A stretch of 63,856 nt of DNA, counting the filler, from Octopus bimaculoides (lineage: Eukaryota): NCBI RefSeq assembly GCF_001194135.2. It is 7 parts of 7 records of this genome, joined end to end, with 100 filler letters (N's around TTAATTAATTAA, not from the genome) between each part and the next. Parts side by side here need not be neighbours in the genome. Positions count along the whole stretch, not along the records: positions 10,795 to 38,611 come from NC_068986.1; 6 more parts are not named here. One strand, given 5' to 3'. Of this stretch, positions 10,795-35,037 are shown piece by piece (within the stretch, counting starts at the first letter, position 1; the number at the start of each line of letters is the position of its first letter). Both the position numbers and the translations under genes were made by a program. Below the pieces are notes generated by a model that was given only the letters and a program-made list of their open reading frames with translations, was not told the origin of the DNA and did not search any database.

Positions 10795-10817
10795 GAGGCA
10801 AACAGAGGTGAAGCCAG

Positions 10818-10887
10818 ACCGGAAGGGCCAAACCGGAAGGGCCAAACCGGAAGGGCCAAACCGGAAGGGTCAGATCGGAAGTCGGCG
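10818..10887 (+). repeat. 14-bp tandem repeat ACCGGAAGGGCCAA x5 (last two diverged), each carrying an ETS-like CGGAAG core
   Basis: Units start at 10818, 10832, 10846, 10860 and 10874 in a visibly CpG-rich stretch. Confidence 0.85.
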
Positions 10888-11639
10888 ACACGCGGTCGAA
10901 GGCTAGCACGTGGGGCCAGTGAGAAAACAGCGACGTTACGAGAAAGACGTGTTCTGATTAGGAGCGATCGTGTACCCCGTTGCGGTCGGCAAGGTAAGGT
11001 CCAACGCTTCATTCTGTCCTTTTGCTTCTTGTTGTCTTCTTCCTCCATCGCACCACATATATAATAGTAGCAAGTTTTACATTGTGTAAAGTCATTAGTT
11101 GAACTATTAGTCCTCTTGCATTCTGGGAGGTATCAGAGAGTTTGAGTGACATTAGACCCCAACTAATGCCCATAAATTAAATGCATCTATCTGGGACACA
11201 TTCGTGGCCTGTCGACCTATGCCTAACGACCACGATCATGGCTTGTCAGGCTTTATGTGTTAATGTCCATTTACGATGGAGACAGGAACCAGCCAGGCCC
11301 CTACAAGGCCCCATTGTCTGTTCTGGCATTGGGGTCACTGTCGTCCAGCTCCACCTTTTTTTTTTTCTTATTTTAGCCCGGCTTTTTAACGGTTCTAGAA
11401 TGGCCGAAGGAAAAGAATATGCACACCACCCGTTTTCAGCGTTTACGGTTAGGGTAAAGGTTAAAGTTTCGCCGAAAACGGGTGGTGTGCGTACTCTTTA
11501 CCTCCTCCAAACAAAGTACCAACCAAGAAATGGAATCAATTTCTCTTTTCTACAATCAGATAAACGAAAGGGCAAAGAACTTTTCACGAACCGGTTCATT
11601 CTTTCAACACTCTCGACACAAAATGTTTCTAATTATTTA

Positions 11640-11837
11640 CCAGCAAATAAGGCAGCGAAATGCTTAGTGGTATTTCGTTTGCCTTTACGTTCCGAGTTCA
11701 AATTCCGCCGGGGTTGACTTTGCCTTTCATCCTTTCGGGGTCGATAAATTGAGTACCAGTTGCCTACTGGAGTCGATCTAATCGACTGGCCCCTCCCCAC
11801 CAGAATTTCAGGCCTTGTGCCTAGAGTAGAAAAGAAT
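11640..11837 (+). mobile_element. tRNA-derived SINE, family B
   Basis: B-box GAGTTCAAATTCC followed by TTGACTTTGCCTTTCATCCTTTCGGGGTCGATAAA. Matches the reverse copies at 40-43 kb. Confidence 0.7.
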
Positions 11838-11946
11838 ATTTACCAGCAAATATGAACATGGACACAGAACTATCACACCTATCCACGAAGCCGGGTACTT
11901 AAGACACCCGTAATTAACATAAAGCCTGGTTAGTGCTGACACTACC

Positions 11947-12300
11947 CGGAAACTAAATCGAAAAAGAAAAAAAAAAGTGCAGCGGGTGTAAAAACAAAGG
12001 TGTAGGAAGCGAATCTGAAACCAAAAATGCCCGCAAAGCAACGGGGGTGGGGGAAGCCTTCGGAAAATCCACAAGATCCGATTTTCTCCCTCGTAATTTT
12101 GAGGAAAATATAATCCTTTTGAAATCACAAATTCAGCTTTTCCTCGGGACCTGAGGAAAGCCTAGTTTGTGATTTCAAAAGGATTGTATTTTCCTTAAAG
12201 TTACGAGGGAGAAATTCGGATCTTGTGGATTTTCCGAATACCTCTCCTCACACCACCACTCCCGTTACACTATTTTTTTTTTTTTTCGATTTCGTTTCCG
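11947..12300. mobile_element. palindromic MITE-like (foldback) element
   Basis: Termini CGGAAACTAAATCGAAAAA / TTTTTCGATTTCGTTTCCG. Inner arms about 12059-12130 and 12166-12238 are near-complementary, with a central GCTTTTCCTC...GAGGAAAGC stem. Confidence 0.75.
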
Positions 12301-12401
12301 AGTAATAATATCAACATTAACCGAAAACCTTTTATATCGACCCAGGATGCGAAACAATTATCTATATTAAATACATAAAAGCAATACCTAAATAATCGTC
12401 A

Positions 12402-12539
12402 TCTTACCTTAAAACATGTCTCCTGAATAGCGAGCCATCGTTAGCATCAATCATAAACAACAGCTGCTAAATAATTATAACCATGACGACTATGATGACG
12501 GTCATATATGAATTCTATTGGTCACTTCAAGTCACGTGG
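12402..12539 (-). promoter_or_regulatory. putative promoter plus first exon, module A
   Basis: ATTGG (12517-12521), 11 nt, then CACGTG within GTCACGTGG (12531-12539). AACGATGGC on minus. Donor AAG|GTAAGATGACG at 12407. Layout mirrors module B. Confidence 0.5.
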
Positions 12540-12892
12540 AATACAGAGGGTAATTGCCTTTCCTTCTTTATTTGCCAGAATACTTTTAATTGAAATATTT
12601 ACCGTGCTGCTATTGTGCAGATACAGATACGCCATTTCTCGTTGGAAACCCTTAGGATCAGGCACGTTTTGTATTTTGGAAATAGTAGTACAATATATTC
12701 ATAGGCCATATCCTCGAATACATGTCGTTGCTTCCTGAAATAGCCTCGGTAGATCTTCCGCGCGACTTTGAAAACAAATTTCTAATCGAAGGTTGAACCA
12801 TTAAAGTGAATTCCGGGGCCTAGCCTAGTAGAGCATAAGGACGTTTTAACCAACTTACCATAATTATGAGAAAAATGTCACTGGTTAGCTTA

Positions 12893-13817
12893 GAAAAATG
12901 AATATTTTTTAATGAAATTTTCTATCCATATATTATTTATTATGTAGATTCCGAATATACAAACATTTTTGGTGAAAGTGTTTTGGAATGGGGGTGGGGG
13001 ACAATTTTCGGAACTTCCAACAGCGTCCACTTAAATTCCTCTTAACTTCCAGGAAAATGAATATTTTTTGTGAAATTTTCTACAAATATACCTTGATGTA
13101 TGTACATTTTGAGCATGTAGGAACTTTGAAGGAAACAACTGCAGATTATTTTTGAGAAGTGTTTCCCACTCGGTGGTGTTTCGGAGCAAGTCGTCCATAA
13201 TTGTTTCATTTTTCTCTATTATGTGCGTATGTGCATCCGTAGATTTCTAATGAAGTTATAAGCAGAAAAGAGAAGCCGTCATAAGAAAACTTACGTTAAA
13301 AATAACATGCACACGATTTTTTTTTCTCAATAGAAGTAAATTCCAAAATAAACATTTCTAGTAGAGAAGTAGAAGAGAACAGAAGCAGCGTATTACTTCA
13401 TTACAAATCTACGGATGCACATACGCACATAATAGAGAAAAATGAAACAATTATGGACGACTTGCTCCGAAACACCACCGAGTGGGGAACNNNNNNNNNN
13501 NNNNNNNNNNNNNNNNNNNNNNNNNNNNNNNNNNNNNNNNNNNNNNNNNNNNNNNNNNNNNNNNNNNNNNNNNNNNNNNNNNNNNNNNNNNNNNNNNNNN
13601 NNNNNNNNNNNNNNNNNNNNNNNNNNNNNNNNNNNNNNNNNNNNNNNNNNNNNNNNNNNNNNTTAAGAGGAATTTAAGTGAACTCTGTTGGAAGTTCCGA
13701 AAATTGTCCCCCACCCCCATTCCAAAACACTTTCACCGAAATTTTTTGTATATTCGGAATCTACGTAATAAATAATATATGCATAGAAAATTTCATTAAA
13801 AAATATTCATTTTTCTG
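12893..13817. mobile_element. ~0.9-kb foldback/MITE-like inverted-repeat element (contains an N gap)
   Basis: About 12893-13045 is the reverse complement of about 13663-13817. About 13160-13260 is the reverse complement of about 13390-13490. Confidence 0.75.
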
Positions 13818-13869
13818 AAAGTTATGACCTTCCAAAGTCGGGGGTGGGGGGTACAACTCTGTAGTTATG

Positions 13870-15500
13870 CCTATTTCTATAGAGTAGTGAAGGGACAAAT
13901 TGTTAGAGTTATTGGCCTTGGTAAGTTTGCAGTAAACTGAGACACTTAAGGACTGAGAACGTGTGTGTGTATGGTGGGATGGGAAGAAACGGTTTGTACA
14001 ATGGAGTTGGCTGATGAGCTTTTACTACAGAACTACTCTGAGAATTACAATGTTTCACAGATGGAGGGATTCTTCATAGTCAGCAGTGATCCTTTTGGTA
14101 TACAAAACTCAGTTGGAGTTTAGGAGTTGGGTAAAGAGTATCTAGTTTGCAGGGATGGGTGGTTTGGTTCAAGCATTGCAGTTGTTGTTTTGTGTTTGAA
14201 CAGCTGTAGTGATGCTATGAGTAAAGCATTCAGGGCCATGTCGGATATGGGTGGACATACCTAAAAGAATGAGTGCAGTCACCAGCCTTGATCATTCTGA
14301 TGGATCAACAGTGAAAACTGACACCAAGATAGTTAATATAACTGGTGGAGCTGTGACTATTCACTTTACTCAAACTACTTAGAGATCCTGGTTATTGTGA
14401 TATTAAATGATCTGATCTCGTTTCTAAGTGCAAAGATGATTATGGGTTGGGTCTTGGGATAAGAAAGATACAAAGGTTATTTGGAATGATTATGAATCAA
14501 TTAGCAATGTGTGATGAGAGAAGATGAGTTGATGTAGAGAAATGAAGACTGAAAAAGATTCAGGTTGAACCTAGTAAGGGTGGCAGGGAATAGTTCTCCA
14601 TCTGTCACATCTGAATAGCTGTCTGGTGTCATGATATGGTTAAATCTTGCAGATCCTTACAACTGTGGATTTAGGTAGTGTTTGGAGGGTGGTTTGAAGG
14701 AACAATGGCAGTATAGAATTAGTGGAAAGTTCAGTCACTGTGTCTGCATCTTCAGCTACTTCTGATAGTTTAGCTAGATTTAAAAGACAATCGAAACTGC
14801 TATGCTACCAAATACATGACAACCATGATAATATAATCAATAGTGTCATTTCTGAATACTCACCATATCCTCATGACAACCATGGGGCTTTACATCAAAA
14901 TGTTATATTGTTATACATAATAATGGTCATATTTTGTCAATTAAACACACTACATATTTGGTCTTCTACTCAGCTTTATCATTATTCTGGTTTCTTTCTT
15001 AAAGTTCTTTCATCCCACATCCTGTGACCTCTTCAGTGAGTCTCTATCCCATGTCTCTTCTTGTCCTGCTTATTCCAGTTTGTCTTTCTCTGGTATGCAT
15101 CCATATATGCACAATTTGCATCTGTATAGCTATGTGTTTACTTACTACATTGTTTGTACCAGGGTCTTTTATATTTTTTCTTCATTCTCAGTCTTTACTA
15201 TGTCTTGTTTGTGTGTATATGGATTTATGTATTATCCTGTTCATATCTGCTTCGTTTTCTTCTCATTTTGTCTTTAGCCATCAGTTTGGGCAGTGTGGTG
15301 GAGTAGGGGTGATGTTCTTATTCCATTCAAGTTTTCTGTTGAGGTTCAGTCTACTACAACCGTATGTGCGGCCACCATCATCTGCCTGCATGTCATGCCT
15401 GGTCTATGTGTTGATAGTACACTTTGATCCTCTCTCTTTGACAATACCCAGGGAACTGCATGCAGTGGATGAAGTCTTGTACATCTCCCAAAAACTATTG
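13870..15500 (-). mobile_element. highly degenerate LINE ORF2 remnant (tentative)
   Basis: Broken minus-strand peptides such as YINYLGVSF (RT domain 7 KYLG-like) and KYKRPWYKQCSK, with many stops. Motif resemblance only. Confidence 0.35.
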
Positions 15501-15714
15501 GGTTCCTAGTAGAAGAGGTTTCTCACTCTACCCATATAATATGATACATGTGACCTAACAAGTAACCTTAAAAAGAAAAATTTACTACATTTTCCAAAGA
15601 ATACACAAAACATGTTATAAACATTTATAGCACTTTAATAACATTCATATACATAAATTCTTTAATACAAATATCACAACGAAATGGTTTTATAACATAC
15701 TTTCGTAGAAAAAG

Positions 15715-17088
15715 TCAGTGGTAAGGTTTATCTCCATCATTAACAGTACATTTATGAGTAGATATATAATCACTGCGAGTAAATGATTTACCACAAATAA
15801 TACAGCTGTATGGTTTTTCCCCAGTATGAGTACGATTGTGTCTAATTAAACACCTCAAATTAGAAAATGTTTTGCCACAGATTCCACAGTGGTGTGCTTT
15901 CTCTCCAGTGTGTGTACGTATATGCCCTTTTAAGCTGCCACTATTGGAAAATTCCTTCCCACAAACTTCACAGTGATATGGTTTTTCTCCAGTATGAGTA
16001 CGTTTATGAACTAATAGGACAGATTTTTCAGAAAATGCTTTCCCACATATTTCACAGTAGTGTGGCTTTTCTCCAGTATGAATACGTGTGTGTTCTGTTA
16101 AGCTGCTCTTATGTGAAAATTCTTTTCCACATATTAAACAGTGATATGGTTTCTCTCCTGTGTGAATACGTCTGTGTCTTTTTAAAGTCCCATTTTGAGA
16201 AAATGCTTTGCCACAGACTTCACAGTGATGTGGTTTTTCTCCAGTATGAATACGATTGTGTTTCTTTAAGCTGCACCTATCAGAAAAGTCTTTTCCACAA
16301 ACTTCACAGTGATATGGTTTCTCTCCTGTGTGAATCCGTTTGTGTAATGTTAAAACATATTTTTCAGGAAATGCTTTTCCACAGATTTCACAGTGGTGTC
16401 GCTTTTCCCCTGTGTGAGTACGTTTATGCCTTATTAAGGTACCACTACTTGTAAATCCTTTCCCACATACTTCACAATGATATGGCTTCTCTCCGGTATG
16501 AACACGTTTGTGAACTGTCAAAGATTCTTTCACAGAAAATGCTTTATCACAGATTTCACAGTGGTAAGGTTTTGAGTGCACACCTCTGTGTTTTTCACAA
16601 TCACTCACATTAGAAAAAGCTTTCCCACAATCATCACACCTATATGGCTTCTCCCCAGTGTGAGTACGTTTATGTCTTGATAAATTACCAAGTCGAGAAA
16701 ATGGTTTGCCACAGATTTCACAATGGTATCGTTTTTCTCCAGTGTGAATGAGTTGATGACTTCTTACATTATGAAACTGTGAAAATGCTTTGCCACAGAT
16801 TTCACAATGAAATGGTTTCTCTCCAGTGTGAGTACGTTTGTGAATCTTTATGTAACCTTTATCAGAAAATGATTTTCCACATATTTCACAGTGAAATGGC
16901 TTCTCTCCTGTGTGTATACGCTTGTGTTCTGTTAAATAAGCTTTTACAGAGAATGCCTTCTCACACACTTCACAGTGGTATGGCTTTTCCCCAGTATGAG
17001 TGCGCCTATGAATAGCTAAATTACATTTAGTAGTAAGTACTTTACCACAAATGCTGCATTTGTAACGTTTGCTCACTTTCTGAAACAT
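15715..17088 (-). CDS. C2H2 (Kruppel-type) zinc-finger protein, 457 aa, 15 canonical fingers plus 1 degenerate finger, no effector domain
   Basis: Repeated CxxC-x12-HxxxH with TGEKP linkers across nearly the whole ORF. In-frame TAA at 17104-17106 supports ATG 17088. Acceptor TTTGTTTTTCTTTCAG| places the exon start at 17211. Confidence 0.95.
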
Positions 17089-18453
17089 TCTCTCAGTTAG
17101 ATTTTAGTTTTCTTTCACTCTATGAAGACATTAGTTGGTAGATAAATCTCTATCCCAGCACTGCTGACTTGCAGTATCCTCTGCAGAAATTCTTTCATCT
17201 GGAAATAGGTCCTGAAAGAAAAACAAACAAATAAATATTAGATACTAATGACCAAATATTTGTGAAATAACCACTTGTGTAGTGTGTGATTGACTATTCT
17301 CAACAAAATCTTATAAAGTTTTCATGATCAATACTCAATGGATCACACCTCTGATCTATATTGTCTACTTCTATGGTCTACCCCTGTATCTATGTTTATG
17401 TTCCATCAACCCTTCTGATACCAACCTGGCTGAAACTGCCTCTGGCTTTGTCGTAGAAATGTCTTATATTGAAAATTAATAGGAAGAAACAGCATCTCTG
17501 CAGAAATACGGTTAAAACATTTCTAGAAAATGTTCCCCAACAGATTGATTGTAGCTGTCTGTGAGTATGGTTGTATTTTATTCAACAAGCACTAATTTGA
17601 TAACTGAAATCTTCTATTCAGTTTTTGTAGTGAGTGAATGTGTGAGTGATTGACAGAGAAAAACCGAGAGAGAGAGAGAGTAATTATGTATGTATGTATG
17701 AATGGCTTCAGTGACACACACTCACATACACGCACGCACACAGGTTGTTTTAATCGATTTTCTCGGTAACTATGGGGGCTAGGAAAAAATACAAAGCGCG
17801 TTCCAATCTATGCACTCGTCTCCACATGTGTGCCATTTTTCACGCGAATCCACTCAGCCGTTTGGCCGTGAACCTCGAGACAAGAAAGAATACAACGGTT
17901 GCCCATGTTCACTTTATTTTATAGATTATGGAGCCTGGTTTTGTAAGAAGGTTCTTCAGACAAAAAGAATGGCACCTCAAACAGCTCCCAATAATCTTTG
18001 CTTTCAAGGGGCTAGATTTTAGGTGCTAATGATATTTCCACATTTTCATGGATTTTTAGGTCTTCGTTTAATGTTGGAAATAACTGAACTGTATTCTAGA
18101 AGTGGAATCATGCTTTGATACAATGCCATTACTATTGTTTACTTTCTTCAGATTCTAATCATCCAACCAGATTTTTGTCTAGCTTTCATGGCCCTTTCTA
18201 GTCCGAAAAGAAGGGCACCCTACTATTTGAGGTGCTTAGAACTTTTACTTTCTCAGTCCTTTTATTATTTGACATTCAACAGATGTTTTCTGGGTTTTAT
18301 GGAATGTCTTAAACGAGGGAATTTTTTGCATTAAATTTTTATCTTGTTTTCTTCTGACCATTTCAATAATTTGTTGAGATCATTTTGCAAAATATTTGGT
18401 AATTTTTGGTTACCTCACCCCACCCCTGTTTTATGGAAAATATCGTTACTTTT

Positions 18454-19175
18454 GGATCTAGTTCAAAACAGGGGCGCCAGTATTTTCTTAACGAAACACT
18501 TTGAAACTTGGGACACTGGTAGAATGTGTCATATAAAACATATTTTTCTTAGTCTTCTTTAGAAAAATTATTATATTGCAACTTATTTCATGTTAAAGTT
18601 GTCGTATTTCTGTAATTTCAACCAATGACTGACGTCCATTCAGCCGAATACATTAAGTGCTGACTACGTAAACAAACGATTCTCAAACGATTCTGGCGGT
18701 GATAAAATTATTATTTCCTTGTCAAAAAATGGCTGAAGCATATTGGCAGTAGCTAATAAACCTTTCTATTATAGGCACAAGGCCTGGTTTTTGAGGGAAG
18801 GGTTAGGGTTAGGGCAAATGTTGTACACATACAGTTCAGGCAGATGTTAACGAAATTATATTAAAAATAAAATGAAGGAAAACGAACACACGTGTGTTGC
18901 CTCTCTGCAAAATGTCAGAAGTAATGGAGATTAAATACGCTTTACATCGCTTAAACTGCCAAAGGAGTAACTGTAAACAGCTGAATACTTGTCAGTGATT
19001 GGTTGAAATTATCGAAATAAGACAATTTTTTACATGAATTAACTTCGAATACAAAATTTTTTTTCTGTTCTATAACACAAAATAGATAAGTATACGAAGT
19101 TTGAAAGTCTTTCGGTACCAAAAACACTACATAAAACATAAATGAAAACTGGTGCCCCCGTTTTGAACTAGATCC
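18454..19175. mobile_element. non-autonomous DNA transposon with 28-bp TIRs and 8-bp TSD
   Basis: TIR GGATCTAGTTCAAAAC(A/G)GGGGC(G/A)CCAGT at both ends. TSD TTACTTTT at 18446-18453 and 19176-19183. Additional internal inverted arms about 18590-18645 and 18980-19037. Confidence 0.8.
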
Positions 19176-21213
19176 TTACTTTTGGTTATCTCCTCCAACG
19201 AAGAAAATTGTTTAATCCTCAATACAAAAAAATGAAAAAATGAAACATCTTACTGAATCTGATAATATTTTTATAACCAATCACAGCAGACCTATTGAAG
19301 AGGCCAAAAGTCAACAACGTGTTGAAGTATTGGATCTAAAACCCTTTTAATCCAAACTCTTGTCACAACATAAACTCGATTTTTTAGTTGGGAGATAACC
19401 CAATTTTTTAATAGGGGCGAGATAACCAAAAGGTACCTAATATTTTCGATATTTTTATGTCATATGTGAATGCTTGTAAAATCATACACTCTTAAATCTC
19501 CTACGTCATCAGTGGAAGAAAAAAAATTGAAGGGCTGACATAACTCTCCTTTGGGATTCTGGGCATTTCAATTTGTTGAACCTGTTGAAACTAAAAACTG
19601 ATGAAAGATTTTGGTGCACAATTTGCAATCTAAATGCAAGATATTTTCCCTTTAACAAAAATATGTTCTTTGTTTCCTAACATGTACCTTCCTCGTAGAA
19701 GCTGTTCAGCCTGCAGAACAAACTGATGTACAAGTTTGATAAGAGAAGATGAAACCTTTTAAACCGGCAGGTTTTGTTATCTCTTACTAGAAATTCTTTC
19801 CTATTGATTGTTTACGTAACACAAGTTCAAGCTTAACAATAGAAGAACAGCTATGATATAAACGATAAAGCTACTAATTTCATTACCAAATATTTCTATT
19901 CTCTAATTTTTTTTATTTTTTATTAATGAATGTCAAGATTAGATTGAAAAATAATCAATAAAGATAATACTAATGAAAAGTCTAAGACTTGTACACCACT
20001 CGGAAATGTGGGTTAAAATAATATAATCAAACGGACTAAATGACGCCTCAGTCATTCAAAACTAACCTATTTAAGGTGCAAGATGAAAGTTGTCGGTATG
20101 TCATGTTATTTCAAGAGATATTCATCATCATCATAAGTATATCAGTGTATATTCAAATTTAAACAGCTGCCGTATTCGTTAATTACACTATTATATCCTC
20201 GAAATCCTTTCATAGTTTGGACAGTTGTCATATTCTTGTTTTGTCCAACTTCTTTCAAATATGGCAATATTTACGTTCGTGTAAGTAATGGGAAAATGAT
20301 AACAATCAGAGCTCTGTATTAGGTATGTTAGATGAGGGGAGCCCCCTGATCTCTTTTGTTTACAGTTATCACAAACATCAACGTATTAGTTGGTGGGCTA
20401 GTTTTGATTTCAATTAGTCGCTTTCAACAGTGTTAAAATAATTTAACATATAAATGACTGACATGCTAAAAACTTACAATGGGAAAAGCACTGGTTCCTT
20501 CATTCCTTCTATGACTTTATCCTGGTGACATATCTATTACAAGTGATCGATGTTTTGTTGTTATTATCATATCCCTGGAGATTTTCTAGGGTCTGGATCA
20601 TGATGAAAAGGCATAAGATAACAACATCAGAAAAGCAAGTGTCCGGTGTTAAGCAAGACCGGCGATTGAGGAATTTACTTTTTACAATTACGGAAAGCTT
20701 CCGCGAAGTTTCTGCTCCATATTATTATTGTTATTCGGGGTAAAACCCTGTAGTTATGCCTTAACTTGTAACATGACTTTAATTAGTAACATATCAAAAA
20801 ATCTACAATATCCAATGCCTGTATATATTATAGATTGATTGAATGGAGTAAGAATCTCGAACATGTAAACATGCTTCCTACGTTCGGTATACCGTCCTTG
20901 GTTATATTTTCGGATCGATTATCCGAAAAATCAATTTCCCGAACAAAATACTCCTCGCCCGTCTAGTTCGGATAATTGAGTTTGTACTGTCTACACAGGT
21001 TATGCTCTACAATGGAAGTAACAATGTCAAGAGCACCATCATAACTGATCCAAAACAGCCTTGCATTTTGGGAGTCCAGTCGACATCAAACCAACATCTT
21101 TGGACAAAAGTAATTTAAATAAAGGAGGAAGGGATGCTTCGTTGGATTCGACTTAGGACGGGGAAACAATTGTCGACATGAAACACATAAAAACACTTTA
21201 GAAATAAACGTCG

Positions 21214-21401
21214 TCTTACGTCAATATAGTGTTCTTCTTTGTCTATTTTCTCCTCAATAAACATCCGTTATCAATGGTAAATAGCAGCAAATACCGTCCA
21301 AGTGCCATCGTTTCAGTTCGTTTCAGTTGAGGGAAATGGTTTGGAGGAAACCAAGATGGCGGTGTACACATCAATTCCATTGGTCATCTAAAGTCACGTG
21401 G
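21214..21401 (-). promoter_or_regulatory. putative promoter plus non-coding first exon of the ZNF gene, module B
   Basis: ATTGG (21379-21383), 11 nt, then CACGTG within GTCACGTGG (21393-21401). YY1-type CAAGATGGCGG at 21352-21362. AACGATGGC on minus. Donor GAC|GTAAGACGACG at 21219. Confidence 0.55.
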
Positions 21402-22190
21402 CGTAGGCTTTTTTTTTTTTATCAGAAGGAATCTCTCAATTTATATATAACTTTAATGCCTTCATATTTCAGAGACAACTCTGTAGTGATTATCTCTGAT
21501 TATCTCACTAAACGTAATCCAGCTGTTTAGTATTGTATGTAATTTGGAAAGATTTTTATTTGCATAGGGCTTTTTTGTTAAGCTACGTGCTAATAAATGA
21601 AATCAAGTAAGGGAGATAAATGCAATAACTTGAAATCTTCGGAAAATATCGAAAATGTATTTCGGTAATGTATGTTGTCATTAAAAACAACTGGTAAAAA
21701 TAGCGTACATATTTATTTTTTATAACACTAGCGAACGATAGTCTATTCATTTGGCAAAACAAATAAGTCATTTTACTATTGGTTAATATATAGATCCGCA
21801 CCCGGTGGAAAAAATTTTTTTTAAATAGTGTAGTAGTTGAAGTGCACCGTATATTGAACAAATATGAAGGAAAAAATGCGCGCTGCGAAGGGGGGGGGGG
21901 CTCGGAAAATTCATACAACCCGAGCACTAAATCTCAACGTCCGGTCACAGGAGTGAANNNNNNNNNNAACGAAAATCATGTAATACTTCTAATGCAATGT
22001 ATATTGAACAAATATGAAGGAAAATATGCGCGCTGGCAAACGGGGGGTGGGGAGAGGGCTCGGAAAATTCACACGGTCAGCCCTGCACAACCCGAGCGCT
22101 GAATCTCAACGTCCGGTCACAGGAGTGAAACGAAAATCATGTAATACTTCTAATGCAATGTATATTGAACAAATATGAAGAATTTTCTTT

Positions 22191-22530
22191 TATTCTTTTA
22201 CTTGTTTTAGTCATTTGACTGCGCCCATGCTGGAGCACCGCCTTCAGTCGAGAAAATCAACCGCAGGACTTATTAAGCCTAGTACTTTTTCTATCTGTTT
22301 CTTTTTGCCGAACCGCTAAGTTACGGGGGCGTAAACACACCAGCATCGGTTGTCAAGCGATGGTGGGGGAACAAACACACACACACACACATATATACGA
22401 CGGATTTCTTTCAGTTTCCGTCTACCAAATCCACTCACAAGGCTTTGGTCAGCCCAAGGTGCCTCGCAGTGGGACTGAACCCGGAACTATGTGGTTGGTA
22501 AGCTACTTACAACACAGCCACTCCTGCGCC
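22191..22530 (-). mobile_element. tRNA-derived SINE, family A (internal deletion)
   Basis: Minus-strand head GGCGCAGGAGTGGCTGTGT...CCGGGTTCAGTCCC. Body matches 41941-42384. Confidence 0.75.
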
Positions 22531-23242
22531 ATTATAGAAATGTTTTTCATACAATTCTCTTTTAGGGTTAGGCACACATGCGCAAAAGGGAACAATTTGA
22601 CCGTTGGAATCATGGTCAAATGAATGTGTTCGACACAAAATTCCTTTTCTTTTGCGAACAAAAGGAATTTTTGCGACGAAGGCATTCATTTGACCATGAT
22701 TCCAACGGTGTGCCCAACCCTAAAAGAGAATCATTTGAACAGCGACAACCAGTAAAACGTGTGATTGTACACACAATATGACTTTGAAGAAGGCCAGATC
22801 GCTGGATGGATTTGTGTGGCGGTGCGGAAATTGTAGGGAAAGCATTTCTATAAGGACGAAGACTTTTATGGAAAAGTCAAAGTTGTCATTGCAGAAAATT
22901 TTTCTCATTGTCTTTCTCGAACATATTGCGGAAGTTTATCCACCCTAAACTCCACCAGCATGGCTTCTCCGAACACACTTCTCGACAAAACTCATTTTCT
23001 GCAATGACAAAACTTTATTTATTTTATTATTTATATCCTTATTCCTATTTCTTCTAGGTCCTTTAAAATTATTATTAGAGCAATCGTGGCCTACATTTTG
23101 GGCATAATATCCAGCTTTGCCGAGTGCCATGTTATAGTGGACTGCGTTTTTGTTAAAAATATCCTCATTACATGATATATTAGATATTCTTCTAAAAATA
23201 TAAACTAAAAAATTTTGCATGCATGAGCGTGATCGTTACTAG

Positions 23243-23555
23243 CGTCGCCTTCCAGGCATATGAAAAAAACATTCGAGCCTGGTCATTGCCAGTGCTGCTG
23301 GACTGGCTCCTGTGCAGGTGGCACGTAAAATACACCATTTTGAGCATGGCCGTTGCCAGTACCACCTGACTGGCCTTCATGCCAGTGGCACGTAAAAGCA
23401 CCCACTACACTCTCGGAGTGGTTGGTGTTAGGAAGGGCATCCAGCTGTAGAAACTCTGCCAGATCAGATTGGAGCCTGGTGCAGCCATCAGGTTCACCAG
23501 TCCTCAGTCAAATCGTCCAGCCCATGCTAGCATGGAAAGTGGACGTTAAACGACG
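23243..23555 (+). mobile_element. RTE-like LINE 3' tail (family C)
   Basis: Shares ...GCGTTAGGAAGGGCATCCAGCTGTAGAAACTCTGCC...CCATGCTAGCATGGAAAG..GACGTTAAACGA with 27310-27722 and 32492-32826. Confidence 0.75.
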
Positions 23556-24910
23556 AATTAGGATAATTACTTCCAATATTTATATACTTAAGATTGGAGT
23601 TAAGCTTGTGGAATAAAGAGCAGATTTTCAATCCAAAAAGGTATAATTATGTAGAGCAAATATAGACTTGAAATACAGGGGTCCTGAATGGACAGAATTC
23701 TGCTTTTATTATACACATGCACGCGCATAGCTGGCTTTTTTTTAGTTCCCATCAACCAGATTCACTCACAAGGCTTTGGTCAGCTTGGGGCTATTGTAGA
23801 AAGCACTTACCTAAGGGGACATTCAGTGGGATTAAACGCATTTCTTAAACCACTCAAATGATTCTTGAGAACCAAAACTGGAATAAATTTGCTTAGAAGG
23901 AGACTGGCTGTGTCGTTAGCTTCCCAACCACAAGTTTAGTCCCACCACTGGCACTTTGGGCAAGTGTTTTCTACAATAGCCTTAGTCTGACCAAAGACTG
24001 GTGAGTGAATTTAATAGAAACTGAAAGAAGCTTATCACGTGTGTGTGTAATCGACAATGCATGATAGTTATGTAGTTGTGAGTGTGCGTGATGTAACCAG
24101 TGACATCCATTTCCAATATTCTGTACAAAAAAAGTCTGGTCATGAGAAAATATTATTTTGCTAGGAAATATGAAGAGCCTGTAGCTGTAGAAAAATCTGC
24201 CTTAAACTCGTACAAACTATACAATCATGGAAAAGCTGACATTAAAACAATGATTACGATTATGATGATGATAATATCCCCACTTTGTTTACAACATTGA
24301 TCACTCAACAAAAGTATTTTCATTTCAATCTTTTATTCAATAATATTTTTTTGTGTGAGTTTCTTTTTTTTTTTGTTTTGATTTAGTTTCCAAAAACAAT
24401 TTTAAATGTACGAAGTGGCAGGTGATGGATTTTGGAGGGGAAAAAAAAAGGTTAGCAATAAACCAACCAAGATGTTTTTGGAAATTATTTAAAATTTTTC
24501 ATTTTTCATTTTTTTTTTTTTTTTAAATATTTTATTTTAAATTATTAAATGTTTCTACTAAAAAGTTTTTGAGGGTATTTTTTTTTAAACAAACCCCTTT
24601 CACCTGACCCAANNNNNNNNNNNNNNNNNNNNNNNNNNNNNNNNNNNNNNNNNNNNNNNNNNNNNNNNNNNNNNNNNNNNNNNNNNNNNNNNNNNNNNNN
24701 NNNNNNNNNNNNNNNNNNNNNNNNNNNNNNNNNNNNNNNNNNNNNNNNNNNNNNNNNNNNNNNNNNNNNNNNNNNNNNNNNNNNNNNNNNNNNNNNNNNN
24801 NNNNNNNNNNNNNNNNNNNNNNNNNNNNNNNNNNNNNNNNNNNNNNNNNNNNNNNNNNNNNNNNNNNNNNNNNNNNNNNNNNNNNNCTTGCCCCTTGTCT
24901 ACTGATCGCA

Positions 24911-24941
<31 letters not shown>

Positions 24942-25008
24942 ACAACGATTTTTGAAAAAAAATCTTGAAGAGGAAAAATGCTTTCCCCTTTTCTTTCATC
25001 TCCAATTT

Positions 25009-25118
25009 TTATTCCAGAGTTATTGTCCAGTTATCCATTATATTGACTCCAGGTTTGCGAATTACTAATACTTTGGTTTCAGTATAATATTTTGTTTCAA
25101 GAATTTTTGATGGTGATC
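25009..25118 (-). CDS. GANAB: glucosidase II alpha subunit (GH31), terminal exon
   Basis: Acceptor TTTTCTTATTTTAG|. Phase 1: (G)SPSKILETKYYTETKVLVIRKPGVNIMDNWTITLE*. Matches the GANAB C-terminal RKPG...W motif. Stop at 25009-25011. Confidence 0.85.
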
Positions 25119-26314
25119 CTAAAATAAGAAAATTAAAAATATATACATACACATATATTACAGGTACTTTTAATTAAAAAAACATGCACCAATTCTAAAT
25201 ATCAATCCATTTTCGGTGTCCACTATGGCTGGGAGTCATAAATGTAAAGTCAGGCACATTCTCAGAAGGGTCCTATAAAAAGCATCATCATTGAACTTTT
25301 CCAATTACTAATGGGTGTTCCCTCCTGGACCTACTTTGGTGTCCCTAAATATGCATCTTTTGGGCTCCCATTCTGCATGAAGAACAAGCTGCAGGTTTAC
25401 TGCTGGTTGTACTGGCCACCACCTTAGGGTAATACTCGTCCACGAGGGTATCTGCCCCACCAGCCTTCTCCCTGCACTATGTTGCTCTCCATCATCAACT
25501 TATTTACCTGCTACCATAATGCCCACGTATATCTACTGCAACCTTCACCTGCAAGCCTCTCCTATATTTCTCTCCATTTGCTACAATCACCTGATCCACC
25601 CCACTAAAAAGCCCAAGCTTCTATATCACCTCATTGAGTCTCACCCATACCCAACGTCCCTCAAGGGCATGTCTCAACATCTGTACCCATCATCTCACAT
25701 TAGCAGTATCTTACTTTCCAACTGGGGTAAGCATGTATCTACTCCACAGCAAGACAACTCCATCTGTTCCCTCTACACCTTAAATCTCCCAAATGGCACA
25801 AAACCACATCCACTCAATACTATTTTTCCACCTCCCAGTTAAGGCTTTTTAATTGTGCAAGGCACCTAGTAACCCTATTGGTGCTCGTGACAAAGCACCC
25901 AATACACTAGAAAGTAGTTGGCATTAGAAAGCGCATCCAGCTGTAGAAATCATGTCAAAGACTATACCTTACCAGCGCCTGTCAAACTGTCCAACCCATG
26001 CCAGCTTGGAAAACAGACATTAGATAATAAGGGGATGAATCCTTCCACTGAAGATCTGAACATCCCTTGTGACAGGTGATGTGGTATGGCTATTTTTACA
26101 CTCTTTCATTATTACAAGCTAGGATTTGTACTGGACCTGTGACACATTCTAAATATTTTCTCTATTCAGTGAAAAAGCCAATATACTAAAGTACCATAAG
26201 AAATCCACCTTTTCAAATAATTAACTTAAGTGCATAAGGAACTGATTCTTGCCAGTGAAGAAAACAGAGGCAAGATTGAAAGCAGCCCTCTCACACACAA
26301 CCAAATGAACTCAC

Positions 26315-26418
26315 CATTAACTGATAGTGTTGGTTTCATCGGTTGTTTCTCCAGACCTGCAATTATTATTCTTTCTATCCACTCTTTAGTTCTATATGTT
26401 GTCTGTGGATTCACCAAT
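26315..26418 (-). CDS. GANAB: glucosidase II alpha subunit exon
   Basis: CAG| ... |GTGAGT, phase 2-1: (K)LVNPQTTYRTKEWIERIIIAGLEKQPMKPTLSVN, with the WIERxII motif. Confidence 0.85.
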
Positions 26419-26575
26419 CTGAAATAAAGAAAACAAAAATGTGTCCAGTATTCAGTAGAGGATAGTAAAAATATGAAGATTTGTTACACTCAAAGCATCT
26501 GGTGTTGGTCATAGCACAGAAAGAATAAATACCAAGGTTGATAATTTTACACTTAAATGGAAAATATTCATTTAA

Positions 26576-26964
26576 CCTTTTGGAATTACAGAGATGTACT
26601 TGCATAGCATGTGACTTGATCTGCACAAAGTTTTGTCAGTGAACAGGTCGTGGTTTCAGAGCAACAGAAATATTTTGACAAATTAAATTTGAAGTGTTTT
26701 TTTTTTTTTTGTGTTATTAAATGGCTTATAAACATCTTCCACGTTGCAATTGTTATTAATTCAAACCAACCACACCTGGCCCAAATATTCTACCTGTTTT
26801 ATATTTATACTGGTCAGATCTGGCTCCTCTCACCTACTCTACAATGTCATACTAAAAACAATTAAATCATTGAAGTTTTTAAGCTATGAGATAATCCAGA
26901 TTAATACAAAACAATGTGAATAAATAAGCATCACATTTGAAAAAGTAATCCGAATGCCAAGGGG
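26576..26964. mobile_element. piggyBac-like MITE (TTAA-flanked)
   Basis: TTAA at 26572-26575 and 26965-26968. Termini CCTTTTGGAATT / AATGCCAAGGGG are imperfectly complementary. Interior shares AAATGGCTTATAAACA and GAGATGTACTTGCATAGC with 29010-29360. Confidence 0.5.
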
Positions 26965-27309
26965 TTAAGACCACATTGTAGGCACAAGCGTGACTTTGCT
27001 TCTCAACCACATGGTCCTGGGCGCAGTCCCACTGCGTGACACTTTAGGCAAATGCTTACTAGGGCCTCAGGCTGACCAACTTCTTGCAAATGGATTTGGT
27101 AGATAGAAACCAACAGATAACTGTTGAAATCATGCCACAGCAGACAGCTGGGAGTCTGGACAGCTCCTTGCCAGCCAGCTCCACGTCAAACTGTCCAACC
27201 CATGCCAACATGGAAAGCAGACATTAAACAATGATGATCTCACACACACACACACACACACACACACAGTCATTGTCATACAAGCAATGTCCTTTGCATC
27301 CACTATTTT

Positions 27310-27722
27310 GTGAAGTCTAGCAAGACCTTCGAACACTGGGCCTCACCGAGGCGATGACTACTGACAGAGACCTTTGGAAATGTGCTGTGCGTGAGAAGAC
27401 TCGGCAAGCCAAGTGAGATCGTTGCCAGTGCCCCTGGACTGGCTCTTGTNNNNNNNNNNTCGTTGCCAGTGCCCCTGGACTGGCTCTTGTGCGGGTGGCA
27501 CATAAAAGACACCATTTCGAGCGTGGCCGTTTTCGTGCGGGTGACACGTAAAAGCACCCACTACACTCTGAGTGGTTGGCGTTAGGAAGGGCATCCAGCT
27601 GTAGAAACTCTGCCAAATTAGATTGGAGCCTGGTGTAGCCATCCGGTTGCACCAGTTCGCAGTCAAATCGTCCAACCCATGCTAGCATGGAAAGCGGACG
27701 TTAAACGATGATGATGATGATG
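27310..27722 (+). mobile_element. RTE-like LINE 3' end with (GAT)n tail (family C)
   Basis: Starts with RTE C-terminus-like TLGLTEAMTTDRDLWKCAVREKTRQAK*, followed by the shared 3' UTR and a GATGATGAT tail. Confidence 0.75.
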
Positions 27723-27973
27723 GCCATGGGGAAATATCTCACTAGGAAAATGGTGAGGTTGGTAAACTTCAACAAATTCTGTCTGACACGCAAGGAAAGA
27801 CAAGTGGATGCTAAAATGGTTGTTATAGTTACACAAAATGCTAAGGTTTTTGATATATCAGAGAAAGGTTCTCCAGTTGGTTTTATAGGAATTATGCCAC
27901 AGTTCTTCATATTTAAACTTGTAACAATAGTTAAGCTACAATTATACATTCTTGCGAGAAAAACAAAACTTAC

Positions 27974-28083
27974 TTGGTGGATAATGTATTTTTTTCAAAT
28001 GTAAATTCTTGATGTGCAAACTCTGCTTGTTTATATTTTGTGGAATGATAATCATCAATATAAAGATCTCCTTTGGCAACATC
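27974..28083 (-). CDS. GANAB: glucosidase II alpha subunit exon
   Basis: TTTTTTTCTCAG| ... |GTAAGT, phase 0-2: DVAKGDLYIDDYHSTKYKQAEFAHQEFTFEKNTLST. Confidence 0.9.
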
Positions 28084-28615
28084 CTGAGAAAAAAAGAGAG
28101 ACGGGGGAGTCAGATACAAAGCATTATAATTTTGGTCCTTTCCTGCTACTACATATACAACCAATCTAAAATACCTCAACAGCAATACAGAATTAGTGTA
28201 AAACTAATAGAAATGAGGTGGTATATGAGGGAGATGTACTGTTGTAAGTTTGTCAGCAGGTGGGGGGGGGGATCACATTGTCATGTAGAATAACAGACAA
28301 AAAATTTGAGGCATGTTATTTAAGAAAAATGGGAGATTCTTTGTTGAAAACACCTATGATTAAAGGTAAACCAGTTATGACACTTAGACCTGTTCAGGAG
28401 ATTCTGAACCATATTATCTCATTTTAAAGCAGTGTGATGTAATTTCAAGGATTTTTGACTTAGTCTTGAGTCACCCAACCATGTAGAGATGCTTGCCTAA
28501 ATTGGTTTTTACCTTTAGTATGGTCCTTAAAGGATTGTTATATGCTAACATAAGCAGTTGGTTCCCACTGAAAAGTTAACAGTTTATGAAGAAATTTTCA
28601 GATGGGGATACTTAC

Positions 28616-28729
28616 ATTTCTGTCAAGACATACAATCAAAGAGAAAGGGTCATGTCTCATCAAAATAGACGAACGCCGCATGCGATACTTCCTTGGAATA
28701 ATGAAGCCACCACGAATATATACAGGAAT
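28616..28729 (-). CDS. GANAB: glucosidase II alpha subunit exon
   Basis: TTTCTCCCTAG| ... |GTAAGT, phase 0-0: IPVYIRGGFIIPRKYRMRRSSILMRHDPFSLIVCLDRN. Confidence 0.92.
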
Positions 28730-29009
28730 CTAGGGAGAAAAAGAGAGAGAAAAAAAAAAAGGAAGCACATTTCAGTATCTTTGATGTTTTTTCCTTATAG
28801 AGAACATAGAGAACTCATTTCTTTATAATTTACATCTCTCAAAGAAGTTGAAAATGAGTTTGTTTATCATTGAATTTAATCAACAAAAGAATAAATTAAT
28901 ATATTCCTATCCTTTTGTTCCGTTGTTATTAAAGAATCTTGACATTAGTTATTTAATTAGTATTTACAATGTGGAAGGTGTTTATAAGCCATAAACCATT
29001 AGATTTACT

Positions 29010-29360
29010 TCAACATTTAAATTCAATTTGCCAAAATTAAAGTTAAAATGAAGTGAATCTAACAGTTTTTGTGTGTTTTTAAATGGCTTATAAACACCTT
29101 CCATGCTGCAATTGTTTTTTTTCAGCACACAATCTCAGATCAGGTCACTTGCTATGCAAGTACATCTCCATCATCGTTTAGCATGGAAAGTGGATGTTAA
29201 ATGATGATGATGGAGATGTACATGCATAGCAAGTGACCTGATCTGAGATTGTGTGCTGAAACAAACAATTGCAGCAGGGAAGGTGTTTATAAGCCATTTA
29301 AAAACACAAAAACTGTTAGATTCACTTCATTTAAATTTTAATTTTGGCAAATTAAATTTG
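29010..29360. mobile_element. ~350-bp near-perfect palindromic MITE-like element
   Basis: About 29010-29175 is the reverse complement of about 29205-29360. Confidence 0.8.
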
Positions 29361-29670
29361 CGTAGCTCAGTGGTTAGGGTATTCAGCTCAAGACAACAAG
29401 GTTAGGAGTTCGATTCCTGGTGGAGCATTGTGTCCTTGAGCAAGACACTTCATTTCACATTACTCCACTCAGCTGGCAAAAAGGAGTTGTACCAGTATTT
29501 CAAAGGGCCAACCTTGTCACATTCTGCATCATGCTGAATCTCCCTCAGAACTACATTAAGGGTACACCTGTCTGTGGAGCGCTCAACCACTTGTACGTTA
29601 ATTTCACGAGCAGGCTGTTCCTTTGACCAGATCAACTGGAAACTTCATCATAACCAATGGAGTGCCAATT
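29361..29670 (+). mobile_element. tRNA-derived SINE, family E
   Basis: A-box TAGCTCAGTGG and B-box GAGTTCGATTCC, then GTCCTTGAGCAAGACACTT. 3' part matches 38712-39025. Confidence 0.7.
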
Positions 29671-29945
29671 AAAATAAGTACAATAATCCCTCGCCATATT
29701 GTGGTTTATTTAAGCTTATGCCGATTCCTCCATGGTGTTGTTTTGTATTTATAAAATAAATGTATACAAATTATAAAAATAATAGAAAAGAAAAATACAG
29801 TACAGTACTGTTTCTACTTCATTGATTTCCACCTATTGTAGCGGGTTTTGGAATGTAATGCCCGTGATAGTTGAGGGATTCCTGTACATGTTTCTGAATA
29901 ACAAAAAAATGCATTAAGAAACAGAAAAAAATTGCAAATGCTTAC

Positions 29946-30020
29946 CTTATCTAAAGGAGCATCTACTTGGACGCTCTGACCACCAGCAAAACTCTTGAAG
30001 TTCATAATGTCATACCAGAT
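29946..30020 (-). CDS. GANAB: glucosidase II alpha subunit exon
   Basis: TTTTTGGTAG| ... |GTAAGC, phase 0-0: IWYDIMNFKSFAGGQSVQVDAPLDK. Confidence 0.9.
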
Positions 30021-30440
30021 CTACCAAAAACAGAATTTACAAACACATTTATCAAGTAATATAAATACAGTAGAATTGATTGACTTCAACTAGTAAATTG
30101 GTTAATAGAACTTTTACCAATTTCATCACAGAAAGTACTTGTTGTAATAAAACTCTTTTCACTAAGAGAGGTAGTTAAGTGAGAATATTGCTCTTGATTG
30201 AGTTGAATGAATGGTCAGCAGTTTTGTGAGAGAGTAAATCAATCAGAAGCCATATACAACAGAAGACCGAGTCTTAGTAATTTAAACAATTATTAACATT
30301 TTATTATAAATGTGTTCAATACAGCAGATTGAACAGACTCCTGAAACTGAAGCAAAAAGGAGTTTCTGGGTGCCCACTCATGACTTCAAAGGTACACAAG
30401 GTGTCTGCAAAAATACATGTAAAGAGTCGCTAATATTTTC

Positions 30441-30790
30441 GTGGCAGTCATCATCACCATTCAACATCCATTCTCCATGCTGGCATGGGTTGGATGGTTT
30501 GACCAGGCCAGCACACTGGAAGGCTGTGCCGAGAGACAGTTTGATTTGGCAGGGCTTCCTACAACTGGACATCCCTCCAAACGCCAACCACGCAGAGTGC
30601 TTTTACCTGTCACCAACACAGGTACAATTTGTGTGACACTGGTATCAGCCACGACCTCAATTTTGTTTGGCTTGATGGATCTTAAGTACGACATAATGCC
30701 AAAGGTCTTGGCCATTGCTTCCGTGAGGCCCAAAACGCGAAAGGAACTTGGCCACTTTCCTCCATGAGGCCCAATGCTTGAAACGAACAG
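30441..30790 (-). mobile_element. RTE-like 3' tail (family C, diverged, reverse orientation)
   Basis: Reverse complement of family C blocks. Minus peptide VLGLTEAMAKTFG resembles the 27310 copy. Confidence 0.6.
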
Positions 30791-35025: not shown

Positions 35026-35037
35026 CAATTCTGCTGT

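Follow-up and report, generated by a model that had tools for sequence, protein, structure and literature searches.

Two related E-box/CCAAT modules probably form the 5′ ends of tandemly duplicated C2H2 zinc-finger genes in Octopus bimaculoides

Octopuses are said, after work by Albertin and colleagues in 2015, to have an expanded set of C2H2 zinc-finger genes. Tandem poly-C2H2 clusters in which promoters and 5′ non-coding exons were duplicated together with the coding sequence are known from the vertebrate KZNF genes and from the octopus C2H2 expansion (PMC12513265). For the cis-regulatory content of cephalopod ZNF promoters, we found no description in the searchable literature. The closest described promoter arrangement is the mammalian NF-Y/USF composite, in which the E-box is placed at −12/−11, or 10–12 bp, from CCAAT in human cells (Fleming 2013, PMC3730095; Dolfini 2016, PMC4889920), and which occurs in promoters, in enhancers, and in LTR12 repeats, where it is common (PMC3730095; PMC4889920). 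In O. bimaculoides, methylation patterns MP2 and MP3 combine methylated gene bodies with an unmethylated TSS and promoter (Macchi 2022, PMC9476566).

Here, we describe two sites, A and B, in a 27.8-kb piece of O. bimaculoides chromosome CM046606.1, which is part of the window, that is, of the whole 63,856-nt stretch of DNA. A and B are probably paralogous 5′ modules of tandemly duplicated C2H2 genes, namely ZNF1, which lies in the piece, and ZNF2, which lies just past the left edge of the piece. The features of the locus are collected in Table 1.

Table 1. Coordinates of the features of the A and B units (positions along the window unless marked L001; a slash marks a splice boundary)
Feature	Position	Strand	Remarks
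ZNF2 acceptor; exon 2; called start	L001 20792; from L001 20793; L001 20913		
CpG-non-depleted domain with module A	10795..13794	.	o/e 0.76-1.32
Proposed ZNF2 intron 1, part inside the piece	10795..12336	-	runs on through a 3,907-N gap of the chromosome assembly
5′ splice site AAG/GTAAGATGACG and conserved intron-proximal block	12337..12407	-	G at 12407; homology stops 33 nt before foldback insertion
Putative ZNF2 first exon (short, non-coding) and TSS region	12408..12488	-	placed from sequence and A/B alignment
Module A promoter block	12489..12539	-	homologous to 21350-21401
Module A CCAAT	12517-12521	-	context TGACCAATAG
Module A E-box	12533-12538		11-nt gap to CCAAT
Assembly gap (172 N, estimated)	13491-13662	.	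intergenic, ZNF1 3′ end to module A
ZNF1 CDS	15715..17088	-	457 aa, about 15-16 C2H2 fingers
ZNF1 exon 2, 5′UTR part	17089..17211	-	behind strong acceptor tttgtttgtttttctttcag/G; 88% identity to ZNF2
Rest of proposed ZNF1 intron 1	17212..21147	-	intron 4,008 nt in all
CpG-non-depleted domain with module B	20795..23294	.	o/e 0.85-1.17; between CpG-depleted GANAB 3′ region and ZNF1 body
5′ splice site GAC/GTAAGACGACG and about 70 nt of conserved intron-proximal sequence	21148..21219	-	G at 21219; 74%/77 nt to 12337-12412
Putative ZNF1 first exon (non-coding) and TSS region	21220..21349	-	placed between promoter block and conserved donor
Module B promoter block	21350..21401	-	77%/52 nt identity to 12489-12539
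YY1-like CAAGATGGCGG in B	21352-21362	+	antisense to gene
Module B CCAAT	21379-21383	-	context TGACCAATGG
Module B E-box CACGTG	21395-21400		11-nt gap to CCAAT

On the minus strand of the 27.8-kb piece, CACGTGACTT-N5-GACCAAT matches at 12517-12538 and 21379-21400 only. Read on the plus strand, the motif is ATTGGTCACTTCAAGTCACGTGG at A (12517-12539) and ATTGGTCATCTAAAGTCACGTGG at B (21379-21401); the two agree at 20 of 23 nt, and exactly 11 nt separate ATTGG from CACGTG in both. Direct reading therefore bears out the original prediction of a common minus-oriented layout with an 11-nt gap. The variable stretch inside the motif is 4 nt long rather than 5. The pattern is found nowhere else in the piece, and chance would yield no match: when up to two mismatches are allowed, A and B are still the sole matches, and none was obtained in 100 dinucleotide shuffles. 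CACGTG occurs five times in the piece and has a CCAAT no more than 40 nt away only at A and B, at 11 nt in each case. The separation of 8.9 kb between the sites takes in the assembly gap, whose length is an estimate. No reading frame or module crosses this gap, which bears only on the A–B distance and has nested inverted repeats on either side (12892-13045 vs 13816-13663, 95%; 13161-13263 vs 13490-13388, 96%).

The prediction had described the surroundings of the motif as otherwise dissimilar, which proved incorrect, since the motif sits in two collinear homologous blocks: the promoter block (77% over 52 nt, E 8e-5) and a block comprising the donor and the start of the intron (12337-12412 and 21148-21224, 74% over 77 nt, E 1e-8). 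The collinear homology spans about 270 nt, begins 2–4 nt upstream of the E-box, and is best kept in the motif; in the exon 1 region, similarity is weaker and indel-rich. Both units have the same block order on the same strand, that is, promoter, donor, unalignable intron, and acceptor plus exon 2. A 7.4 x 10 kb comparison found no further collinear similarity between the A and B units, the interior of the ZNF1 intron does not align with the ZNF2 intron, and no conserved RNA structure was found at the donor/intron-start block. Such poor conservation of exon 1 beside a conserved 70-nt start of the intron is unusual. As judged from the alignment, the identical E-box/CCAAT spacing is due to common descent of the duplicated module and, being inherited, does not by itself argue for a constraint on spacing.

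To the left of position 10795, the chromosome assembly (GCA_001194135.2) contains a second C2H2 gene, ZNF2, which has the same orientation as module A, lies downstream of it, and shares a homologous acceptor and 5′UTR exon with ZNF1. This agrees with the prediction of a tandem paralogue beyond the scaffold start. The homology to ZNF1 takes in the acceptor, the 5′UTR exon, and the first 151 codons at 88–89% nucleotide identity (5′UTR 88%; CDS 89% nucleotide and 82% amino acid identity), with amino-acid differences clustered in the recognition helices and the three codon positions diverged equally. ZNF1 and ZNF2 thus form a tandem duplicate pair, having paralogous same-strand coding exons and collinear homologous non-coding landmarks, in a ZNF array located immediately downstream of GANAB. 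The flanks of the 3,907-N gap overlap (224 nt, 99%), so that the true ZNF2 intron may be only about 1.9 kb long. ATTAAA signals are found 51 and 78 nt past the ZNF1 stop codon. Among transcript contigs (Logan and others), none carries the ZNF1 protein.

Consensus splice sites are placed such that they would join the 5′UTR. Going downstream from either motif along the minus strand, the first GTRAG encountered is the proposed donor, and the sequence GTAAGA(T/C)GACG is present at 12407 and 21219 as predicted, in the contexts AAG/GTAAGA (A) and GAC/GTAAGA (B). The B donor has a C at −1. The acceptors of ZNF1 and ZNF2 both have long pyrimidine tracts and read cag/G, exon 2 of ZNF1 starting at 17211, and the last 100–155 nt of the proposed ZNF1 intron 1 are 79–82% identical to ZNF2. 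In the exon 2 5′UTR of ZNF1, an in-frame stop lies 6 codons before the start codon, which, together with the strong conserved acceptor, implies an upstream non-coding exon; the same 5′UTR contains a 27-codon uORF that ZNF2 does not have. The proposed junction from 21220 to 17211 corresponds to CM046606.1 116620294 to 116616285, and the ZNF1 TSS would, by analogy, lie roughly 60–80 nt downstream of CCAAT.

Two further components proposed to belong to the modules fared less well. The ORFs that were thought to open at a shared AACGATGGC do stop before the donors: in A, ATG 12438 encodes MARYSGDMF, and the TAA directly abuts the G/GTAAGA donor, and in B, where uATGs occur in the exon 1 region at 21308 and about 21265, the ORF from 21308 has 21 codons, its TAG lying about 25 nt short of the donor. 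The 9-mers themselves, however, occupy non-homologous positions in the global alignment, in which the A copy of AACGATGGC aligns with AACGGATG near 21270 of B, and the calculated chance of a shared 9-mer between stretches of 110–160 nt is about 7%. The predicted YY1-type site is present in B but is not conserved in A. Its core AAGATGGCGGC occurs in B only, on the antisense strand, and the aligned A sequence, ATGATGACGG, has two mismatches and changes the core from GCCAT to GTCAT. Judging by these alignments, neither the AACGATGGC/uORF correspondence nor the YY1 site is likely to be more than incidental.

The NF-Y consensus is RRCCAATSR, to which B (GACCAATGG) conforms at 9/9 positions and A (GACCAATAG) at 8/9, and the E-box has a USF-type flank (GTCACGTG), seen as AAGTCACGTGG on the plus strand at both sites. 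A TATA-like TATAAT (12479-12474) lies just downstream of the A block, at +42 to +47 from the first C of CCAAT; B is without one. In the model that we propose, each module would consist of a compact TATA-poor promoter, a short uATG-rich non-coding first exon, and a 5′ splice site of the sequence GTAAGA. A USF/TFE/Max-type E-box (CCACGTGAC) would form the upstream edge of the promoter and be followed 11 nt downstream by an NF-Y-type CCAAT at a spacing inherited from the ancestral unit, and about 70 nt of conserved sequence would follow each splice site. Exon 1 would be spliced across a 2–4 kb intron to the strong acceptor, which precedes the start codon by about 123 nt, the coding sequence being contained in a single exon.

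CpG composition lends independent, if indirect, support to the presence of 5′ ends near A and B. The o/e ratio is 1.30–1.35 in the modules, about 1 in the 2.5–3 kb domains around them, 0.51 in the piece overall, and 0.07–0.43 in ZNF1 exon 2 and the GANAB body. By composition, each CpG-retaining 5′ domain adjoins a CpG-depleted body; that of A lies directly downstream of ZNF1 exon 2 and its 3′ flank (13795-17294, o/e 0.07–0.43). High CpG o/e could also stem in part from young repeat insertions or from generally unmethylated intergenic DNA.

The two blocks stayed alignable, and alignment was lost in the remaining intron and the intergenic DNA; from one pairwise comparison of two copies, this suggests purifying selection on factor binding and splice-site use. 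Alternatively, the blocks could be decaying, functionless leftovers of the duplication, with the E-box/CCAAT pair kept by chance and the real promoters or TSSs at other places, such as another exon or a point further upstream in the CpG-rich domains. Between ZNF1 and ZNF2, block identity (74–77%) is indeed lower than that of exon 2 and its synonymous four-fold sites (89%), and treating the blocks as a conserved island therefore requires the extra assumption of exon 2 gene conversion or a later duplication. Moreover, perfect runs of 7–11 nt are by calculation not rare at about 75% identity, and the conservation is that of a single pair. We nevertheless regard this explanation as unlikely, because a neutral divergence of about 11% would have left the remaining intron and intergenic DNA alignable, which it is not, and because the surviving blocks fall exactly at the expected promoter edge and 5′ splice site, their perfectly kept sub-runs are recognizable factor sites in a known arrangement, each proposed donor is the first GTRAG after its motif, and the CpG pattern fits.

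Repeats are very abundant in the octopus genome, several families of them and foldback elements lie near the modules, and the NF-Y/USF arrangement is common in mammalian LTR12 repeats, so that one could also picture the module as belonging to a dispersed repeat or a transposable element that may bear its own promoter, that landed near both genes independently, and that has no relation to ZNF regulation as such. The foldback insertion beside A (11943-12304) is separate and outside the homologous blocks, though, and neither terminal inverted or direct repeats nor target-site duplications were found to bound the modules. A common dispersed repeat, the possibility raised with the original prediction, is opposed by the lack of a third module copy in the 27.8-kb piece and the L001 tail, and 10 metagenome matches to the 19-nt motif resemble it in the motif only. 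Since the blocks keep their order, strand, and position relative to paralogous genes with homologous acceptor and exon 2, duplication of the whole unit is simpler than independent insertion, which makes the repeat origin very unlikely. Also very unlikely is that the E-box/CCAAT block drives the plus strand, whether as a bidirectional promoter or to give a non-coding transcript that is antisense or divergent. CACGTG is palindromic, NF-Y is active in both orientations, and the YY1-like site of B would then be in sense (AAGATGGCGG on the plus strand), but it would sit upstream of CCAAT instead of in its usual post-TSS position and is not conserved in A. No plus-strand gene is called from B to the GANAB 3′ end or from A to ZNF1, and it is the minus strand that carries the conserved donor block as well as the homologous genes downstream.

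Paralogous 5′ modules of ZNF1 and ZNF2 are an ordinary outcome of tandem duplication and not a new kind of element. The original prediction suggested a cassette shared across the cephalopod C2H2 expansion, for which the comparison covered two close paralogues. It is a reading of low probability that the E-box-N11-CCAAT promoter, the GTAAGAYGACG donor, and the conserved intron-proximal block spread along with the coding exon during much of the octopus-specific C2H2 expansion. If they did, a large fraction of these genes would share one NF-Y/bHLH-ZIP-dependent promoter cassette, which might account for the embryonic and neural expression that they have in common and provide a handle on array co-regulation.

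As in the mammalian NF-Y/USF composite, the E-box, a canonical CACGTG whose flank is of the GTCAC type, is placed 5′ of a sense CCAAT. Here the gap is 11 nt, and the TATA-like element of A at +42 to +47 compares with +50 in the mammalian studies (PMC3730095; PMC4889920), which also agree with the 10–12 nt spacing quoted in the original prediction. Counted from the first C of CCAAT, the E-box has its last G at −12; as the human-study coordinates are measured from matrix positions or edges, the spacing is compatible with theirs, and an exact match is not claimable. Order, orientation, and spacing are thus compatible with NF-Y/USF stereo-positioning, although the octopus arrangement differs from the mammalian composite in coming from a mollusc, in being known here from sequence, and in comprising two related instances that have it in common by descent. 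The alternation of depleted bodies and 3′ flanks with non-depleted 2.5–3 kb module domains resembles the unmethylated 5′ ends of octopus genes (PMC9476566); compared with MP2/MP3, it is a matter of composition alone, to which repeats may add CpGs. Unlike vertebrate KZNF clusters, ZNF1 and ZNF2 have no KRAB or other effector-domain exon, the ZNF1 protein having no domain besides its C2H2 fingers. They do resemble the KZNF and octopus C2H2 clusters in being head-to-tail paralogues on one strand, with all fingers in one coding exon and a separate 5′UTR exon.

Two minus-strand modules, A (~12337–12539) and B (~21148–21401), each combine an E-box with a CCAAT box, and the original prediction was that this pair, with its identical spacing, marks a promoter and first exon repeated on either side of a zinc-finger gene. 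The pair is indeed unique in the part of the window from 10795 to 38611 (hereafter the piece): a scan for CACGTGACTT-N5-GACCAAT, allowing ≤2 mismatches, returned only the module A and B sites, and dinucleotide shuffles gave 0 matches to the pattern. CACGTG occurs five times in the piece, with a CCAAT ≤40 nt away in two of the five, which are modules A and B, and with a gap of 11 nt in both. The predicted donors, short upstream ORFs, and acceptor, at which exon 2 of the gene starts (17211), likewise match the sequence.

Sensitive blastn and global alignment revealed two collinear same-strand blocks shared by the modules, here called the promoter and donor blocks (Table), between which similarity is weak and indels are many. 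The homology runs from 2–4 nt upstream of the E-box to ~85 nt past the donor, stopping in module A 33 nt short of a foldback insertion (11943–12304), and no third copy of the module was found in the piece. Because the modules are homologous, the identity of their E-box/CCAAT spacing is inherited and provides no independent support for a spacing rule. Two other elements of the prediction did not survive alignment. The AACGATGGC 9-mers, proposed as a shared part, are non-homologous, with the A copy pairing with AACGGATG of module B near 21270; the calculated chance of a common 9-mer between stretches of this size is ~7%. The YY1-like CAAGATGGCGG is present in module B only, antisense to the gene, and its GCCAT core is broken in the aligned A sequence. 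The AACGATGGC and YY1 features, like the uORFs, are probably incidental.

Features of the locus and CpG observed/expected (o/e) values. Positions are those of the window; a slash marks the splice junction.
Feature	Position	Strand	Sequence or value
Promoter block, A and B	12489–12539 and 21350–21401	minus	77% over 52 nt
Donor block, A and B	12337–12412 and 21148–21224	minus	74% over 77 nt, E 1e-8
Module A motif	12539–12517	minus	CCACGTGACTTGAAGTGACCAAT
Module B motif	21401–21379	minus	CCACGTGACTTTAGATGACCAAT
Module A donor	12407	minus	AAG/GTAAGATGACG
Module B donor	21219	minus	GAC/GTAAGACGACG
ZNF1 protein	15715–17088	minus	457 aa
GANAB, 3' half	25012–38190	minus	
Inverted repeats around 13491–13662 gap, outer arms	12892–13045 and 13816–13663		95%
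Inverted repeats around 13491–13662 gap, inner arms	13161–13263 and 13490–13388		96%
Palindromic element in ZNF2 intron, inner arms	12050–12140 and 12157–12247		88%
Palindromic element in ZNF2 intron, outer arms	11943–11989 and 12258–12304		
CpG o/e, GANAB body			0.05–0.5
CpG o/e, ZNF1 exon 2 and 3' flank	13.8–17.3 kb		0.07–0.43
CpG o/e, module A			1.35
CpG o/e, module B			1.30
CpG o/e, domain containing A	10.8–13.8 kb		0.76–1.32
CpG o/e, domain containing B	20.8–23.3 kb		0.85–1.17

Downstream of module B lies ZNF1, the C2H2 gene inside the window, whose protein has ~15–16 C2H2 fingers and no other domain. A single match to this protein was obtained among public contigs, namely Octopus bimaculoides CM046606.1 (GCA_001194135.2), and window positions 10795–27088 are identical to the locus fetched from that assembly (L001, numbered separately). 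Adding 116,599,074 to a window position here gives the position on CM046606.1, with the strand unchanged. Past a gap to the left of 10795, the chromosome sequence contains ZNF2, another same-strand C2H2 gene with a called length of 345 aa, whose acceptor (tttttctttcag/GACG) and 5'UTR are homologous to those of ZNF1; the tandem paralogue to which module A had been tied, beyond the scaffold edge, is thus found where it was expected. ATTAAA signals are located 51 and 78 nt past the ZNF1 stop. A 27-codon uORF in ZNF1 exon 2 (17089–17211; ccagATGaaag) is missing in ZNF2 (ccatTTGaaag; L001 20793–20921), and therefore does not count among conserved 5'UTR features. Upstream of ZNF1, GANAB (glucosidase II alpha, GH31) is represented by its 3' half, with at least 10 recognizable coding exons, the last of which ends at 25012.

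The proposed intron is 4,008 nt long in ZNF1 and, as assembled, 6.1 kb in ZNF2, the latter including a gap of 3,907 N (L001 16295–20201). The flanks of this gap (window 10795–11064; L001 20202–20443) are mutual duplicates, with 224 nt at 99% identity and a further 59-nt partial match. They are probably redundant contig ends, the alternative being a true repeat; the gap itself may thus be spurious, leaving a ZNF2 intron of just ~1.9 kb. Another gap, at 13491–13662 between the 3' end of ZNF1 and module A, is crossed by no frame or module, and only the A–B distance of 8.9 kb depends on continuity across it. The nested inverted repeats surrounding it (12892–13816) represent a foldback element or, alternatively, an artefact of assembly.

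The divergence between the two genes bears on whether the modules reflect constraint or decay. Over the first 453 coding nt (L001 20922–21374 in ZNF2), ZNF1 and ZNF2 are 89% identical, with codon positions 1, 2, and 3 equally diverged (~89% identity each) and four-fold sites 89% identical (JC distance 0.12). The amino-acid differences cluster in the recognition helices of the fingers, the pattern that diversifying selection on DNA-contact residues would be expected to leave once the genes had duplicated. Identity is 88% in the exon-2 5'UTR, 82% in the final 100 nt of the intron, and just 74–77% in the 5' blocks of the modules, and the intron interiors and intergenic DNA of the two genes gave no alignment. 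The simplest reading is that the duplication of the unit is old, and that exon 2 and ~150–300 nt of upstream intron were homogenized later, through gene conversion or partial re-duplication. The promoter and donor blocks would then be survivors of the older divergence, which, within this one pairwise comparison, favors constraint acting on them. The contrast between a likely homogenized exon 2 and 5' modules of older divergence adds a small point on array evolution.

With CpG o/e at 0.51 and GpC at 0.95, the piece is CpG-depleted. In O. bimaculoides methylomes, gene bodies are methylated while the TSS and promoter are unmethylated (MP2), or the gene's first third is unmethylated (MP3) (Macchi 2022, PMC9476566). 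Judged by composition, a 5' end close to each module would produce such a CpG profile, to which young repeats and intergenic DNA lacking methylation could also add. The strong depletion across the GANAB body is to be expected of a methylated housekeeping gene.

Several repeats were also observed. The ~360-nt palindromic element in the ZNF2 intron (11943–12304) matched several plant miRNA-precursor Rfam families, all below threshold, and looks like a MITE-type insertion, not a miRNA. Hairpins at 22606–22703 and 29117–29264 gave matches of a similar kind, also below threshold. Copies of a ~290-nt dispersed repeat (23266–23553, 27460–27722, 31659–31759, 32532–32825, and 38382–38611) lie downstream of GANAB and in its introns, in both orientations and 80–97% alike. 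Their CpG o/e of ~0.7, relative to the depleted gene body around them, suggests young SINE-like insertions. An imperfect tandem duplication (21843–22019 and 21993–22180, 80%) spans a 10-N gap (21958–21967) within the CpG-rich domain upstream of module B, and a related fragment (11997–12078) is found in the intron downstream of A.

Protein searches yielded no other octopus locus. With the full-length ZNF1 protein, vertebrate KZNFs dominated and no octopus or self match appeared among the listed proteins (<800 aa only), and the exact sequence was absent from the clustered protein collection. No transcript contigs carrying the ZNF1 protein were found, and a framework-masked query yielded no candidate orthologue, paralogue, or transcript fragment. 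Joined GANAB exons, used to seek orthologous cephalopod loci, matched a slug best (58%) and no cephalopod. In metagenomes, the 19-nt motif gave 10 matches at ~7 independent loci on AT-rich, eukaryote-like contigs; none shows similarity past the motif and one lies inside a 411-aa open frame, and we judge these matches unrelated and uninformative.

Two other explanations of the conserved intronic sequence were considered and rejected. As a structured RNA, it matched no Rfam family and its consensus fold reached just −1.2 kcal/mol; an apparent covariation, GACG/CGTC versus GATG/CATC, was not recovered. As an alternative first exon, it would end without a conserved donor.

The feature is real and non-random and, read from sequence, would be a module duplicated between two tandem octopus C2H2 genes that comprises promoter, first exon, and 5' splice site, with an NF-Y/USF-like composite; the promoter and exon model originally put forward is probably right. 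The promoter would be compact, with a putative bHLH-ZIP E-box (USF/TFE/Max type, GTCACGTG flank) at its upstream edge and a putative NF-Y CCAAT box 11 nt downstream, followed by a short, presumably non-coding exon with uATGs, and then by the GTAAGA donor and ~70 nt of conserved intronic sequence. The explanation is ordinary: the locus is fully in line with tandem duplication of a gene and its promoter, and shows nothing further. If true, the model provides a concrete promoter and first-exon annotation for two octopus C2H2 array genes, and a compact 23-nt cis-element (E-box and CCAAT) to seek across the rest of the expansion, for the whole of which a common cassette was originally suggested as a possibility. 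The most specific paper on cephalopod C2H2 expansions contains no promoter or motif analysis (PMC12513265), and none was found in the cephalopod C2H2 papers searchable, so taking the search genome-wide would be new, albeit with routine methods. Tandem paralogues in these expansions often belong to different co-expression modules (PMC12513265), which speaks neither for nor against a shared core promoter.

For NF-Y and USF in human cells, the E-box has been placed at −12/−11 from the first C of CCAAT (Fleming 2013, PMC3730095), and an E-box–CCAAT distance of 10–12 bp has been reported (Dolfini 2016, PMC4889920). The order, orientation, and distance of the elements in both modules are compatible with this stereo-positioning, although matrix-edge conventions bar a claim of exact identity.
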